Positions 13,250 to 62,639 of a stretch of 64,000 nt of DNA are shown one piece after another. Made by a program: the position numbers and the translations under genes. The stretch's first letter is position 1. Every line of letters starts with the position of its first letter. The notes under the pieces were generated by a model. That model made no database searches. It was not told the DNA's origin and saw nothing but the letters and a program-made list of their open reading frames with translations. The DNA is taken from the IMG/VR virus record IMGVR_UViG_3300027996_002186, positions 62,001 to 126,000 of that record. One strand, 5' to 3'.

Positions 13250-14008
13250 ATGCTAAATTATAAAGAGTATTTAAAGGAGGCCCAAGATAATCAAGTCGTT
13301 GTGTTGGATGATGGACAAGGTGGTAATATGTTTAAGACTGTTAAAAATGGTAGTAAGAACTCAATTACTTATCTTAATGCTGTTATAAAAAGGTTTATCG
13401 AAAGTGTTTATGGATCATCTGGGTTTGTTTATGGTAAACATACTGATATATTTATCGATAATAAGATAATTAATGGTGAGTATATATCAAAGATGGTTAA
13501 TAATTACACCATTTTTAAAAATGTGATAAGAATTAATAATATTAAAGAGGAAGAATCTTTTTATAATTTTATGTTATCTAATCTGAATAATATTTATTCA
13601 CCAAATGGTAAATTCTTTTTAGAACAATCATTACCTATTTTAATAAACACAACTAGAAGGGGAAATGTACTTGAAAAAATGGCTAAGGAATCCTTTTTAA
13701 AGTATTCTAAAGAAAAAGATATCGAGATTACTATACAAAACCCTTCTGTTGATGAAGATATAAACGGTGTTGATTTCAAATTCTTATCCAATGGTAGAAG
13801 TTTTACTGTTCAAGTAAAGCCATTTACTGATTATAAGTATATTGGTGATAAAATTTTCATAAAGACAGAAGGATCTTTATCATTGAATACAAACTACTTG
13901 ATACTATGTGATGGTAAGAATTGTATTAAATTAAGAAATACACCCTCTAATCCAGTTAAAATAAAAGGTAATACTTTTATTTCAAGTAAATCTAATCTAC
14001 TTATTTAA
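13250..14008 (+). CDS. Putative PD-(D/E)xK-fold nuclease-like protein
   Basis: G-x2-LE helix followed by DINGVDF...TVQVK; N-terminal tag MLNYKEYLKE. Confidence 0.45.
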   Translation: MLNYKEYLKEAQDNQVVVLDDGQGGNMFKTVKNGSKNSITYLNAVIKRFIESVYGSSGFVYGKHTDIFIDNKIINGEYISKMVNNYTIFKNVIRINNIKEEESFYNFMLSNLNNIYSPNGKFFLEQSLPILINTTRRGNVLEKMAKESFLKYSKEKDIEITIQNPSVDEDINGVDFKFLSNGRSFTVQVKPFTDYKYIGDKIFIKTEGSLSLNTNYLILCDGKNCIKLRNTPSNPVKIKGNTFISSKSNLLI

Positions 14009-15462
14009 ATCCACCGAATATATCCATTACCACACTCAATCTTCTTGTTATTTCTGGCATACCTAATGGTTCAATAATAGAATTAATTGGTGATAGTATT
14101 GATTTCTCAAATTGTATATCATAATCTATCTCAGGAGCAAATTCAATCGGGTAAGACCCTCTAGCATAAGCAAATGTGGAATTAACTGATTTATCTTTAC
14201 AGATATAATATTTAATCTTTGTACCAGATTTCATAAATTCATACTTATCTTGTAATTTCTTATCATTGTTCAATAAGTAATTATGATAAGCGGCCGCTTT
14301 AACAGCAAAGTGAGCTCCACTTATAAATTGTAATGGTAATGTTTTATCATTTAAAACTTTCTCATCATATTTATTACAAGATGATTGCATTGCGATATCA
14401 TCAACATCAGCCAATTCAAATTCCTTTCTAAGACCTTTTACCAATTTAAGTAAATCCTTTATATTGAATGTATCGGGATTCTCAAATAAATACTCTACTA
14501 TCCCAACAATCTTATCACGAGCAAAGGCTGGTGTGGATGACCTAACAAGTTCAACTCCTTTAGGATAAATATATTTCAATCTATCATATGGAATACCATC
14601 CTCATATAAAATATGTTGTATGTATTTTTTCTTAGCAATATTTATAATTGATTCTGATATTCTTTCAAGTTCAAAATCTTCTTTGTTTTCAACACCATAT
14701 GATTCTGCGTGTTTATCTAAACAATCTTTGAAGTAACCCTCATATTTTATTTGGTCAACTCCTAATATAAAATCAACCTCAGTAGACCAGTTCCAGATAA
14801 TATCATTTGTTAAAACTCCATCATCTATCATCTTATTTAACTTCCTATCTTTCACGAAGTTACCATCTATTAAAACTAACCCATAATCTTCTTTCAGAAG
14901 TTCTGTAAATTCCGTGATATCTTTTGACATACCCAAATAATTTGGATTATCTGTTTCTATCAAATCTCTTGATAGTATAATAAATTTCTTATCAATTGAA
15001 GATAGATATTCATCGTTAAATACTTGATCTCTCCAAGTACAATGGTCCATACAAGGTTTGAATGAAACAAAAATTGAATCGGTATCACCATAGATACTAA
15101 CATCCTCTTTCGTATCAATTGGTGTGATATCTTTTATATTTAATTGTTTGTGTAGCTCAGTATCAAGATGCCATTGATTATACCAATAATCTTGGTTATC
15201 ATCATCCATCTTTCTAGTCAATTCTCTACCCTCTGCTGTTATAGTACCTGCAACGTGGTTGTTATAAAGTATGAAGTATGGTGTTGCGAAGGCTCCATAA
15301 GAACCATTCAATACAAGTTTTAGTCATTTACCCCCACTTAAAATAAAGCGGGGGTGATTAAAGAGCGAGTTGAAGGGCATTGTAGTAATCTACTTCCTTT
15401 TTCAACTCGCTCGCTTTAATTTTTAATGACTCGATTTTTTTTATTTTTTCGGTTTTTGTCAT
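14001..15462 (-). CDS. Family B DNA polymerase, C-terminal subunit of a split gene, interrupted by a 40-nt gap at 15321-15360
   Basis: ORF1 15462-15361 (MTKTEK...YYNALQLAL*) plus ORF2 from 15320 (KLVLNGSYGAF...YGDTDS...KKKY...KGVELVRSSTP) together rebuild motif B QLALKLVLNGSYG and motif C. No exonuclease domain or motif A is present in the window. Confidence 0.9.
15321..15412 (-). other. Candidate programmed translational bypass element in polB
   Basis: CTT TAA TCACCCCCGCTT-TATTTT-AAGTGGGGGT AAATGA CTA AAA, plus a perfect 12-bp inverted repeat at 15363-15374 / 15401-15412. Confidence 0.7.
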
Positions 15463-15527
15463 ATTTAATAAATTTGTTATAAAGGGTACTTATACATTTT
15501 GATATATAAATAAACCTCTTAAAGTAT

Positions 15528-15614
15528 ATGATAAAGGAAGAAAAAGTTTCAGTAAAAATCGGACCACGTAACATAAAATATTTTAATATGTGTGGATATG
15601 ATGTTACACTTTAG
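15528..15614 (+). pseudogene. Truncated N-terminus of a homing-endonuclease-like gene
   Basis: MIKEEKVSVKIGPRNIKYFNMCGYDVTL*, similar to the N-terminus of the remnant at 10315. Confidence 0.45.
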
Positions 15615-15664
15615 TCAGGCGCAATTTGGTCAGATAACAGAACTATACGCCTATATGGTATTTG

Positions 15665-15986
15665 TTATGCTGATTGATAACCACTTATATTCTCACCATC
15701 ATAATAGTCGATACCTATCCAATTTTCATAATCTTCTACATTCACGTTTATATAATTCCCATTGTGGTAATAATTCACCAGGTATAATAATAAACAATAT
15801 AGGATCTGCCATTAGCTCTGTACCTCTTTTAACCTTTGTTTGTTTTGATTTTAATTTTACAATATCAACCTTTGATACATTATCAACTCCATATCTCTCT
15901 AAACAGGTTTCTTTTATTTTAGATATGATTGATTTTTTATTTATCTTATATTGATTATAGTAATGGAAATAGTAGTAACCTATCAC
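15665..15986 (-). pseudogene. Frameshifted homing-endonuclease-like remnant
   Basis: KIKETCLERYGVDNVSK repeat motif and WELYKRECRRL, continuing in another frame as YENWIGIDYYDGE before a stop. Confidence 0.55.
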
Positions 15987-16048
15987 TATTTGATTAATCA
16001 GATATATTATATTTTAAATTTAATATATAATAAAAATAACAGTATCAA

Positions 16049-61595: not shown

Positions 61596-62639
61596 ATGAT
61601 AGGTGAAAGATTTAATATGGAGGATGTTTTCTTCCGAGATTTAACAGTTTGTGTTCTTGATACCTTAGAAGGTCAAGTTAATTGGGTTAATAGATTTTCT
61701 TCTGGGGATGTTTATGTAAAAGTACCTTTTTATTACTCATTGACGGGTGATGAGAGGTTTTTATTGGATACATTTCAGGATGATGTGGTTTCTGAAAATA
61801 GATTTGTTGAATTAAACACCGATATTATACCAAGGGGTCACATAACAATGACTGGATTTAATATTAATTCTGATGAATTCTCCAATCCTAATGTTTGGTT
61901 GAGAATGGTTGTCGAGAATGAGGTTGAGATAAGAAAGATTTTAGCTAAAGTTAGAGCAGTTCCTATTACTGTTAGTTATGATTTGGAAATATTACTTTCT
62001 AGTGAAGTAGATACGTTCAAGTGTAGTCAGGCAATAATGGATACTTTATGGTTATATAAATTTATGTATTTTGAGCATAACTTTATGAATATAGATGCTG
62101 TTATATTAATGCCAGATGGTAATTCAATAGAAATGGCACGTGAAAAAAATATGTCTTCTGATAATAATATTAAGATGAAGGTCTCATTTGAGGTACAAAC
62201 ATATTATCCAGCTTTTAGAAAAGATAGATATAATGGTGTGGGTTATCCTAGGAATTATGGTGATGGTATGACTGATTTAAATGGTCATACAATAGTAGAT
62301 GGGTTTTCGGAGGGATTTGGTACTGATAACCCATCGAATTCTCCTGGACCGTTCGCGCCCGGAGGTGGTACTAATAACGTACCGAATTCTCCTTATGATT
62401 ATATTGGTGGTCTAGATCCTAATATTAATACTGGTACTACACCATATGGTGCTACTGGTAATTATACATACATTCAAAATCCTAATGGTTCCGGTGATCC
62501 TGATTATTATATCACACCTAAAAGAACTAGATGGTTTAATAATATACTAAGAGCTAGACAAAAATCTAGTATACCAATAAATAACCCAAATTCACAAGAT
62601 CCTAATAATGGATCATCAGGAAATCCTTACACTCCGTAA
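61596..62639 (+). CDS. Tail completion / sheath stabiliser (gp15-like) with a low-complexity C-terminal tail
   Basis: VPFYY, IIPRG, AVPITVSYDLEI, FEVQTYYP; likely start ATG 61596. Confidence 0.55.
   Translation: MIGERFNMEDVFFRDLTVCVLDTLEGQVNWVNRFSSGDVYVKVPFYYSLTGDERFLLDTFQDDVVSENRFVELNTDIIPRGHITMTGFNINSDEFSNPNVWLRMVVENEVEIRKILAKVRAVPITVSYDLEILLSSEVDTFKCSQAIMDTLWLYKFMYFEHNFMNIDAVILMPDGNSIEMAREKNMSSDNNIKMKVSFEVQTYYPAFRKDRYNGVGYPRNYGDGMTDLNGHTIVDGFSEGFGTDNPSNSPGPFAPGGGTNNVPNSPYDYIGGLDPNINTGTTPYGATGNYTYIQNPNGSGDPDYYITPKRTRWFNNILRARQKSSIPINNPNSQDPNNGSSGNPYTP

Follow-up and report, generated by a model that had tools for sequence, protein, structure and literature searches.

What does a perfect 12-bp stem, embedded in a coding sequence immediately upstream of a stop codon, do in a marine phage DNA polymerase gene, and how can that gene be read across the 40-nt interruption that follows? 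We addressed this question in a 64,000-nt window (positions 62,001 to 126,000 of IMG/VR virus record IMGVR_UViG_3300027996_002186), in which the interrupted gene lies on the minus strand and encodes the C-terminal half of a split family-B DNA polymerase. The observation made in the first-pass annotation is confirmed: GAGCGAGTTGAA (15412-15401) is the exact reverse complement of TTCAACTCGCTC (15374-15363), with a 26-nt loop, and ATTAAA and TTTAAT (15362-15357) can extend the helix past a 2-nt GC bulge and so over the CTT-TAA site. The counting of the site needs one correction, since the 3' arm ends on the C of the take-off codon CTT. When the region proposed beforehand for folding, 15300-15470 on the minus strand (171 nt), was folded, its energy was -51.2 kcal/mol against -24.4 +/- 3.5 for 200 dinucleotide shuffles (z = -7.7, no shuffle as good), and the minimum free energy (MFE) structure contains this stem. 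The annotation's claim that the stem uses GC-rich codons that are atypical of the genome also holds: in 116 long ORFs of this 29.9% GC genome, AGC makes up 3.4% of Ser codons, CTC 2.2% of Leu codons, and GCG and GCC 8.2% and 6.4% of Ala codons. An assembly artefact was rejected, since 100% of sampled words of the stretch occur in 8 marine/seawater DNA runs from 6 studies, and a contig from a further DNA run (94% of words) covers 13900-15400, including the gap and the 3' arm of the stem, without a difference. Two smaller features of the annotation were not confirmed as conserved. The inner GTAG/CTAC hairpin in the loop has 72% of cells paired, and the ATTAAA/TTTAAT extension has 81% paired against 77% in shuffles, neither of which is distinguishable from background.

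The features of the element are collected in Table 1. Related polymerase loci, numbered with the prefix L, serve as comparison; L052 is a close gapless relative.

Table 1. Features of the interrupted polymerase gene and its upstream region (positions in the window).
Position	Strand	Feature	Basis
15361..15462	-	ORF1 (leader), ATG 15462 through codon 34, CTT; encodes MTKTEKIKKIESLKIKASELKKEVDYYNALQLAL, the start of the polymerase C-terminal gene	Gapless homologue L001 (4879-6303) reads straight through ...QLAL-KLVLNGSYG
15425..15431	-	P1, 5' strand (AGUCAUU, codons Glu-Ser-Leu)	MFE fold; covaries with its partner (AGTCTTT/AAAGACT, GTCTCATT/AATGAGAC, GTCACT/AGTGGC)
15415..15420	-	ATTAAA, possible extension of the stem past a 2-nt bulge (G15414, C15413)	Present in the window; data on conservation leave it undecided
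15401..15412	-	P2, 5' arm of the 12-bp stem (GAGCGAGUUGAA)	Sequence, fold, comparison of alleles, covariation
15375..15400	-	26-nt loop of P2 with the GTAG/CTAC mini-hairpin	Mini-hairpin not conserved; one pair (33-40) unpaired in 9 of 15 sequences
15363..15374	-	P2, 3' arm (UUCAACUCGCUC); ends on the first base of the take-off codon	Sequence, fold, covariation
15361..15363	-	Take-off codon CTT (Leu34)	All 14 distinct class-A gaps are flanked by CTT...CTA
15358..15360	-	TAA directly after the take-off codon	Sequence; comparison of gaps
15321..15360	-	40-nt coding gap (37 nt plus the landing codon)	Absent from gapless homologues; alignment to gapless L052 resumes exactly at 15320
15330..15355	-	P3, gap hairpin ACCCCCGCUU / AAGUGGGGGU with loop UAUUUU, 10 bp	MFE fold; hairpin dG -18 here
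15330..15335	-	Shine-Dalgarno (SD)-like GGGGGU, 6 nt 5' of the landing codon	Comparison of gaps
15322..15328	-	P1, 3' strand (AAUGACU); overlaps the out-of-frame AUG 15327-15325, the in-frame UGA 15326-15324 and the first two bases of the landing codon	MFE fold; covariation
15321..15323	-	Landing codon CTA	Comparison of gaps
14001..15320	-	ORF2, resumes at AAA (Lys of motif B, KLVLNGSYG) and runs through YGDTDS to the stop; rest of the PolB C-terminal half	Pfam PF00136; alignment to herpesvirus Pol motifs; dN/dS
15466..15988		About 520 nt specific to the cassette, with scrambled remnants of a DUF7487-type homing endonuclease gene (N-terminal piece 15528-15608 on +; C-terminal pieces 15941-15671 on -, frameshifted)	Absent from L052; Pfam/PHROG hits; tblastn with intact homologues

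To determine whether the interruption is functional, we compared about 125 related loci, of which roughly half carry a 36-48 nt gap at one of four positions within motif B. Gapless homologues read QLAL-KLVLNGSYG at exactly the point where the window is interrupted. Among 33 distinct gaps, the flanking codons are mostly matched: CTT/CTA in class A, the class gapped at the window's site, and GCT/GCA or GCT/GCT, GTT/GTA, and, in 5 gaps, TAT/TAC at the others. Seven class-B gaps, however, have landing codons (AAC, AGC, AAA) that match TAT poorly, and three more use the stop triplets TAA or TAG. A stop lies 1-2 codons after take-off in 28 of 33 gaps; in 25 it is the second codon, so that a sense codon separates it from the take-off codon and the stalling trigger is unclear, and 5 gaps have no nearby stop. 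Hairpins are present in all 33 gaps with quite different sequences and a median of -20 kcal/mol, starting 5 nt after take-off in 18, and a G-run lies 5-9 nt before the landing codon in 29. Gap length mod 3 is 11/11/11, so the frame is irrelevant. The downstream ORF is under purifying selection, including between gap-bearing pairs (dN/dS 0.04-0.13), and the genome holds no second copy of the polymerase C-terminal half (PF00136). As the annotation had proposed, the gap is clearly functional rather than a random insertion.

We next asked whether the stem belongs to the gap. The annotation had stated that its reading would fail if gapless homologues carried the stem equally, and this comparison came out in favor of the reading. 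In 16 of 18 distinct alleles gapped at or next to the window's site (classes A and A2), 11-13 of 13 in-register pairs form, whereas 44 distinct gapless alleles lack the stem, with 3-10 pairs (median about 6); median fold energies are -21.2 and -7.6 kcal/mol, respectively. The gapless set includes homologues that encode the identical peptide ASELKKEVDYYNALQLAL with other codons, and gapless relatives such as L074 have synonymous Ser, Glu and Leu codons in place of those of the 5' arm. The association is partly inherited, because the class-A cassettes are related, and the Mann-Whitney p-values are not corrected for phylogeny. Within the alignment, 7 of 13 pairs are compensatory and 89% of cells are paired, against 29-45% when partners are slid, and none of 500 shuffles reaches the observed covariation. 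G-U pairs place the structure on the sense-strand RNA. Natural variants with other arm sequences include L035, L037 and L043. At other gap positions, a different stem abuts that position's take-off codon, and the abutting duplex is strong only at each class's own site: -20.2 kcal/mol for class A, -17.7 for class C and -12.1 for class B, against about -6 for gapless alleles. Class-B 5' stems are weak and heterogeneous; a fixed-register test of a class-B stem was unconvincing, and only the energy comparison supports a stem there.

The interpretation given in the annotation is thus partly supported. It had proposed that the stem reflects selection on RNA structure and refolds behind the ribosome or gates translation, by analogy with T4 gene 60, and that a Lys-rich leader may be the nascent-peptide signal. 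That the stem is a selected RNA structure tied to the gap is supported. Refolding behind the ribosome is plausible, since the 3' arm occupies -11 to +1 of the P-site codon and the 5' arm -49 to -38, but no experiment or RNA data bear on it. The leader is Lys-rich (KIKK at residues 6-9), yet gapless homologues have equally Lys-rich leaders and no gap-specific residue was found that RNA pairing does not already explain; a gap-specific nascent-peptide signal is therefore not supported, and whether take-off needs a nascent peptide is left undecided by these sequences. The annotation missed that the stem (P2) is one helix of a three-helix element, and that the whole unit is a mobile cassette linked to a homing endonuclease gene and spread over many phages and four insertion sites.

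Several lines of evidence indicate this mobility. Gap state is scattered on the polymerase tree, where class A needs 11 changes for 12 rows and class B 14 for 14. Identity to L052 is 93% downstream of 15320 but 73% in the leader, and 15466-15988 is an insertion relative to it. An upstream DUF7487 (phrog_3339) homing-endonuclease gene occurs in 23 of 34 distinct gap loci against 0 of 41 gapless loci (Fisher p = 2e-11), and the window keeps only a scrambled remnant of it; an intact homologue lies in L027 (323-1423, minus strand). Only one element of this type exists in the 242-kb record; the only other C4-G4 hairpin, at genome position 215687, is a bidirectional terminator between convergent genes.

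Our preferred explanation, which we consider more likely than not, is that P2 is the conserved 5' stem of an mRNA element that lets ribosomes hop over a 40-nt insertion in an essential gene. In this view, a selfish cassette consisting of a DUF7487 homing-endonuclease gene (decayed in this window), a recoded 34-codon leader and the gap sits at the 5' end of the gene, and the gap interrupts motif B, presumably destroying the endonuclease's own target; cleavage was not assayed. Ribosomes would start at AUG 15462 and translate 34 codons. With CUU in the P site, UAA in the A site and the GC hairpin P3 starting 5 nt further on, decoding would stall, peptidyl-tRNA-Leu would let go of CUU and the mRNA would slide forward. 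The 12 nt just 5' of the P site would leave the exit channel and zip onto the already exposed 5' arm, forming P2 (about -20 kcal/mol), which would favor forward movement and block back-sliding. The tRNA would re-pair at the landing codon and AAA would be read next, giving an uninterrupted QLAL-KLVLNGSYG (junction peptide ...EVDYYNALQLALK). In the untranslated mRNA, P1 and P3 would also hide the internal SD-like run and the out-of-frame AUG. The anatomy, the conservation and covariation, the link to the gap and to the endonuclease gene, the mobility and the purifying selection were all read from the sequences analyzed, whereas each translational step is our inference. That one tRNA reads both CTT and CTA is likewise inferred, because the host, and with it its tRNAs and anti-SD sequence, is unknown; the phage encodes only tRNA-Arg(TCT) and no tRNA-Leu that could explain the codon pair. 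Retention of the gap in mRNA and a single polypeptide are both assumed, as no proteomic data were available and none of the metatranscriptomes searched contains the gap region. They contain only an L052-like gapless relative, whose loose end at 15320 reads ...CAACTAGCTTTG followed by AAA with different codons; this is another allele rather than spliced window mRNA, and it does not settle the matter in either direction. An alternative genetic code is not a solution, because the frame changes across the gap and gap lengths are evenly spread over mod 3.

Other explanations appear less likely. Of these, the least improbable, though still doubtful, is that bypass occurs but the stem acts as a gate or regulator instead of a driver, slowing or spacing ribosomes on the leader, masking the take-off region, stabilizing the mRNA or tuning how much polymerase is made. 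In naked mRNA the stem and its A/U extension cover the take-off codon, rare codons cluster in the stem, and ribosome spacing is held to matter for gene 60; however, the 3' arm always abuts the take-off codon, even when the take-off site moves by 3 to 8 codons, which points to a role at take-off itself rather than a general one. About as unlikely is removal of the gap from the transcript by cleavage and ligation, with P1 and P2 as the scaffold that extrudes the gap hairpin and holds the two coding ends together. The three-way junction brings the take-off and landing codons to within a few nucleotides of each other, frame-independent gap lengths fit splicing as well as hopping, and there are no RNA data to exclude it. 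Splicing gives no reason, though, for a duplicated, synonymous codon on both sides of the gap at four different sites, for a G-run at SD spacing before the landing codon, or for a stop 1-2 codons after take-off. At 36-48 nt the gap is far too small for a group I or II intron, a search of Rfam gave no hit better than E = 0.5, and to our knowledge no bacterial mRNA-splicing machinery of this kind is known.

We regard as very unlikely that the stem is a DNA-level or neutral feature of the cassette, such as a recognition or recombination structure or a hitch-hiker inherited with the gap. Class-A leaders are related and travel with the endonuclease gene, so co-occurrence alone could reflect common descent, but the seven compensatory pairs occur within class A, G-U pairs would be A-C mismatches on the other strand, non-homologous stems are found at classes C and B, and the loop between the arms diverges freely. 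Least likely is a broken gene or one expressed as a 34-residue peptide plus a polymerase fragment started internally, for example from TTG 15311, or from AUG 15327 with a +1 slip on AAAA. GGGGGU followed by this AUG looks like a start site, and its frame could reach the polymerase frame through a +1 slip on A-AAA-A. The AUG is absent from L029, L048, L037 and L034, however, no in-frame start is conserved and L024 has none near the site; independent initiation after the gap was rejected on these grounds. Furthermore, the motif-B lysine codon directly following the landing codon is invariant, the leader and downstream ORFs are both conserved (dN/dS 0.04-0.13), and P1 sequesters the AUG. An intrinsic terminator formed by the stem plus a T-run was not found in the window.

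Efficient programmed bypassing in bacteria and phages rests essentially on one system, T4 gene 60 and its homologues, all of them in topoisomerase genes. Literature searches found no report of a bypass in a DNA polymerase gene, although the collection searched is incomplete and a prior description cannot be excluded. The locus would more likely than not represent a second, independently evolved family of high-efficiency bypass cassettes in phages, linked to a homing endonuclease and widespread in marine and freshwater large phages, and its conserved 5' stem would be the first comparative evidence that exit-side mRNA pairing is a selected driver of the hop. With at least 33 natural variants at four take-off sites, in which the 5' stem is conserved, covaries and moves with the take-off codon (subject to the weak class-B stems noted above), it makes testable whether mRNA refolding behind the ribosome drives the hop, how landing is specified (NNU to NNA or NNC codon pairs, SD spacing), and how selfish endonuclease cassettes invade an essential catalytic motif without killing the phage. 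In practice, gene callers will annotate these polymerases as broken or truncated in many metagenomic phage genomes.

The closest known system is the T4 gene 60 cassette, with a MobA homing endonuclease, an N-terminal extension and a 50-nt coding gap in the topoisomerase II subunit gene, and its homologues (Manning & Atkins, bioRxiv 10.1101/2022.08.31.505936). The T4 model, including a 5' stem loop and exit-side pairing as a driver of forward movement, is described in bioRxiv 10.1101/2024.12.09.627546. In both cases an essential replication gene is split and interrupted close to the 5' end of its second ORF (take-off at codon 34 here, 46 in T4), take-off and landing codons are matched and differ at most at the wobble base, a stop follows take-off, a stable hairpin opens the gap, an SD-like run lies about 6 nt before landing, a stem lies 5' of take-off, and a free-standing homing endonuclease gene lies next door, with a patchy, mobile distribution and decayed endonuclease copies. 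There is no homology between them: the host gene here is PolB rather than topoisomerase, and the endonuclease is DUF7487 / phrog_3339 rather than MobA, so the window does not belong to the gene 60/MobA family itself. The gap is also shorter and almost entirely one hairpin, four insertion sites span about 9 codons of motif B against one site (+/- 1 codon) in the gene 60 family, an extra closing helix (P1) joins the leader to the landing site, and take-off codons are NNU with landing codons mostly NNA or NNC. The 5' stem abuts the take-off codon (0 nt against 9 nt in T4) and is conserved and covarying, whereas in the gene 60 family it is not conserved between clades, so its role is debated even there. 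Mitochondrial 'byp' elements of Magnusiomyces capitatus are likewise short GC-rich hairpin inserts in coding sequences of an AT-rich genome, flanked by matched codons, mobile and tolerated through bypassing, but they occur in many copies per genome and per gene, whereas here there is one element per phage genome, always in one gene and linked to an endonuclease gene and to conserved upstream stems. Candidate programmed hops inferred from sequence in other phages, in a terminase gene with strong candidates at two positions (cited in bioRxiv 10.1101/2024.12.09.627546) and as a regulatory bypass in a Streptomyces phage (PMC10732093), involve different genes and signals and were not examined in detail here. 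Finally, as in split family-B polymerase genes and in homing-endonuclease, intron or intein insertions at polymerase motifs, the polymerase is encoded in two genes (the N-terminal half lies 96 kb away) and a selfish element targets a highly conserved motif, but the interruption here is a 40-nt gap, inferred to be untranslated, and not an intron, an intein or an endonuclease ORF inside the gene.

To describe the locus, we read the minus strand around the stem and assigned its coding frames (see the table of coordinates). A 34-codon ORF, MTKTEKIKKIESLKIKASELKKEVDYYNALQLAL, ends in CTT followed by TAA, and after 40 nt a 439-codon frame opens at AAA with KLVLNGSYGAF. The downstream frame is the palm/thumb half of a family-B DNA polymerase (PF00136), in which KLVLNGSYG aligns to motif B of herpesvirus polymerases and YGDTDS to motif C. 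The N-terminal half of the polymerase is a separate gene about 96 kb away on the opposite strand of this 241,918-bp, 29.9% GC virus record. A near-identical polymerase locus lies on two contigs of 483 and 493 kb (L008 and L053 in our set of related loci), twice the size of the record, so the record may be a fragment of a much larger phage genome; it contains only one tRNA gene (Arg-TCT). The observation in the first-pass annotation held: the two arms are exactly as it described them, with 12 perfect pairs and a 26-nt loop, and the 3' arm ends on the C of the CTT codon.

Coordinates of the features discussed (window positions unless marked as genome positions of the virus record, G000:C1)
Feature	Position	Strand	Remark
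Leader ORF, start codon ATG	15462	-	34 codons
Take-off codon CTT	15363-15361	-	last codon of the leader ORF
Stop codon TAA	15360-15358	-	directly follows CTT
Downstream polymerase frame	15320 to 14001	-	439 codons, opens at AAA
P1, 5' strand (AGUCAUU)	15431-15425	-	
P1, 3' strand (AAUGACU)	15328-15322	-	overlaps the landing codon, the in-frame UGA and an out-of-frame AUG
P2, 5' arm	15412-15401	-	the reported stem
P2, 3' arm	15374-15363	-	the reported stem
P3, gap hairpin	15355-15330	-	
Region folded	15300-15470	-	
Stretch covered by a contig from a further DNA run	13900-15400		gap and 3' arm of the stem, no difference
Stretch covered by a contig from RNA run X19	15271-15320		gapless relative
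Stretch without counterpart in gapless L052	15466-15988		
Two polymerase genes about 96 kb apart on opposite strands, and inverted, frameshifted remnant of a DUF7487 homing endonuclease gene upstream of the C-terminal gene	15466-15988; genome 235508-235909		
Bidirectional intrinsic terminator	genome 215687-215708		outside the window

The structure is more than expected by chance, as the folded region reaches -51.2 kcal/mol against -24.4 +/- 3.5 for shuffles (z = -7.7). The arms use codons that are rare in this genome: AGC makes up 3.4% of Ser codons, CTC 2.2% of Leu codons, and GCG and GCC 8.2% and 6.4% of Ala codons. The DNA is real, since eight independent marine DNA runs contain the stretch completely, and a contig from a further run covers the gap and the 3' arm of the stem without a difference. 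The only other C4...G4 hairpin in the genome is a bidirectional intrinsic terminator between convergent genes.

To establish whether the gap is shared, we compared the gene in related phages. A 634-kb uncultured phage (LR745206.1) has the same gene without the gap and reads ...YYNALQLAL-KLVLNGSYGAF.... Scans of IMG/VR and of metagenome contigs gave about 125 loci (numbered with the prefix L); where the region could be read, 53 loci are gapless and 54 carry 36-48 extra nucleotides, at four positions within about nine codons of motif B.

Classes of gap by position within motif B
Class	Position of gap	Take-off / landing codons
A2	after QLA	GCT / GCA or GCT
A (the window)	after QLAL	CTT / CTA in all 14 distinct sequences
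C	after KLV	GTT / GTA
B	after NGSY	TAT / TAC in five, TAA or TAG in three, AAC, AGC or AAA in seven

Over 33 distinct gaps, length mod 3 is 11/11/11, a stop lies one or two codons after take-off in 28, a GC-rich hairpin (median -20 kcal/mol) starts 5 nt after take-off in 18, and a G-run ends 5-9 nt before the landing codon in 29. Near-identical gaps in L042 against L043, and in L016 against L036, differ by one base in a G-run or an A-run, so that the gap is in frame in one and out of frame in the other; this fits frame-independent decoding, but homopolymer sequencing error is also possible. The downstream ORF is intact in every gapped locus that could be read, with dN/dS of 0.04-0.13, including between pairs that both carry gaps, and the genome has no second copy of the C-terminal half. 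Five relatives with a class-A gap (L042, L043, L044, L123, L124) carry, in addition, a second insertion of about 360-520 nt inside the polymerase C-terminal gene, about 380 nt into it at residues 85-114; no Rfam family matches this insertion, and we did not identify its nature (intron, another mobile element).

Together these are the hallmarks of a peptidyl-tRNA hop. They do not fit a frameshift, readthrough, a pseudogene or an internal start. No start codon is conserved after the gap, and the invariant motif-B lysine codon directly follows the landing codon. Some class-B gaps fit less well, since in L016, L017, L023, L033, L036 and L118 the landing-side triplets AAC, AGC and AAA do not match take-off TAT. 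Short direct repeats (TTAAC, or TTAGC in L017) flank these gaps and covary, but the decoding rule for these elements is unexplained, as is the trigger for take-off wherever a sense codon precedes the stop.

The first-pass annotation had proposed in advance that its reading would fail if gapless homologues had the stem equally, and we therefore scored the pairing in both groups. In the window's register, 16 of 18 distinct class A/A2 sequences form 11-13 of 13 pairs, whereas the 44 distinct gapless sequences form 3-10, with a median of about 6. Two of the gapless alleles, L018 and L066, keep 10 of 13 pairs and may be lineages that lost a gap precisely. Folding the 69 nt that end at the take-off codon gives medians of -21.2 and -7.6 kcal/mol, respectively. 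Several gapless alleles (L067, L074, L076, L087) encode the identical peptide ASELKKEVDYYNALQLAL but use other codons, such as TCT for Ser, and have no stem; selection therefore acts on the nucleotides. On an ungapped alignment of 16 class-A/A2 leaders, 7 of 13 pairs show changes on both sides, for example GAGTTG/CAACTC, GAGCTG/CAGCTC, AAGCT/AGCTT, AGTTTG/CAAACT and TTGCAA/TTGCAA. In this alignment 89% of cells pair, against 29-45% when partners are slid, no shuffle of 500 reaches the observed covariation, and G-U cells put the structure on the sense-strand RNA. The interpretation in the first-pass annotation is thus supported in part: its central stem is tied to the gap, but the inner GTAG/CTAC hairpin that it described is not conserved, the ATTAAA/TTTAAT extension could not be told from A/T-rich background, and it is open whether the Lys-rich leader, proposed as a nascent-peptide signal, contributes, with no specific support for it because the leader is equally Lys-rich in gapless alleles.

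To determine whether the stem follows the take-off codon, we measured the duplex energy between the 15 nt that abut each candidate take-off codon and the upstream leader. The duplex is strong only at each class's own site: -20.2 kcal/mol for class A; -17.7 for class C at its own site, but about -5 at the class-A site; -12.1 for class B at its own site and -6 to -8 elsewhere; and about -6 everywhere for gapless alleles. The class-C and class-B stems use other leader segments, for example AGCTTCAGAG/CTCTGAAGCT in L080 and GAGUCAUUAAG/CUUAAUGGCUC in L090, although class-B stems are weaker and heterogeneous. This positional tracking is the strongest argument that the stem acts at take-off.

The minimum-energy fold is a three-way junction in which the reported stem (P2) is joined by a helix, P1, between the leader and the landing site and by the gap hairpin, P3. 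P1 pairs in about 90% of cells and covaries, for example AGTCTTT/AAAGACT in three sequences, GTCTCATT/AATGAGAC and GTCACT/AGTGGC. Searches for Rfam families and terminator motifs returned no match to this element.

Several lines of evidence indicate that the element is a mobile cassette. On a tree of the downstream protein the gap state is scattered, with class A needing 11 changes for 12 rows and class B 14 for 14. Two contigs, L024 (A2) and L026 (B), have identical downstream proteins but carry gaps after QLA and after NGSY, respectively, which implies very recent cassette exchange. Against the close gapless relative L052, identity is 93% from 15320 downstream and 86% beyond 15989, but only 73% in the leader, and the stretch between leader and 15989 listed in the table has no counterpart. 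Gapped loci carry a divergently transcribed ORF of 285-389 aa just upstream, which matches DUF7487 and PHROGs annotated as homing endonuclease; it is found in 23 of 34 distinct gapped loci and in none of 41 gapless loci. The window keeps only scrambled pieces of this gene.

Whereas the pairing, its covariation and its association with the gap were observed in the sequences, the mechanism that we propose from them is inferred. With CUU in the P site, the 3' arm (-11 to +1) would lie inside the ribosome and the 5' arm (-49 to -38) outside it, so that in this view the stem cannot exist at take-off and can only form as the mRNA slides forward. We propose that it zips up on the exit side, biasing movement forward and preventing return. 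P3 would stall decoding, and its G-rich arm would then position the ribosome on CUA through the anti-SD sequence. None of these steps was tested, because no RNA run contained the gap region; a metatranscriptome contig (RNA run X19) from a gapless, L052-like relative covers the junction, so at least the gapless allele appears in RNA libraries from the sea. The recurrent NNU-to-NNA (or UAU-to-UAC) asymmetry suggests weaker pairing at take-off than at landing, a suggestion that rests on the general rules of wobble decoding since the host is unknown. P1 and P3 may also hide the internal SD-like run and AUG from fresh initiation.

The arrangement of gap and neighbouring endonuclease gene is the architecture described for the MobA/gene 60 cassette, but with unrelated parts. 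All known homologues of the gene 60 bypass are in topoisomerase genes, and our literature searches found no case in a polymerase. In our reading this element works like gene 60 but is not a member of that family. It also differs in having a conserved, covarying 5' stem, whereas the 5' stem loop of gene 60 is not conserved between clades.
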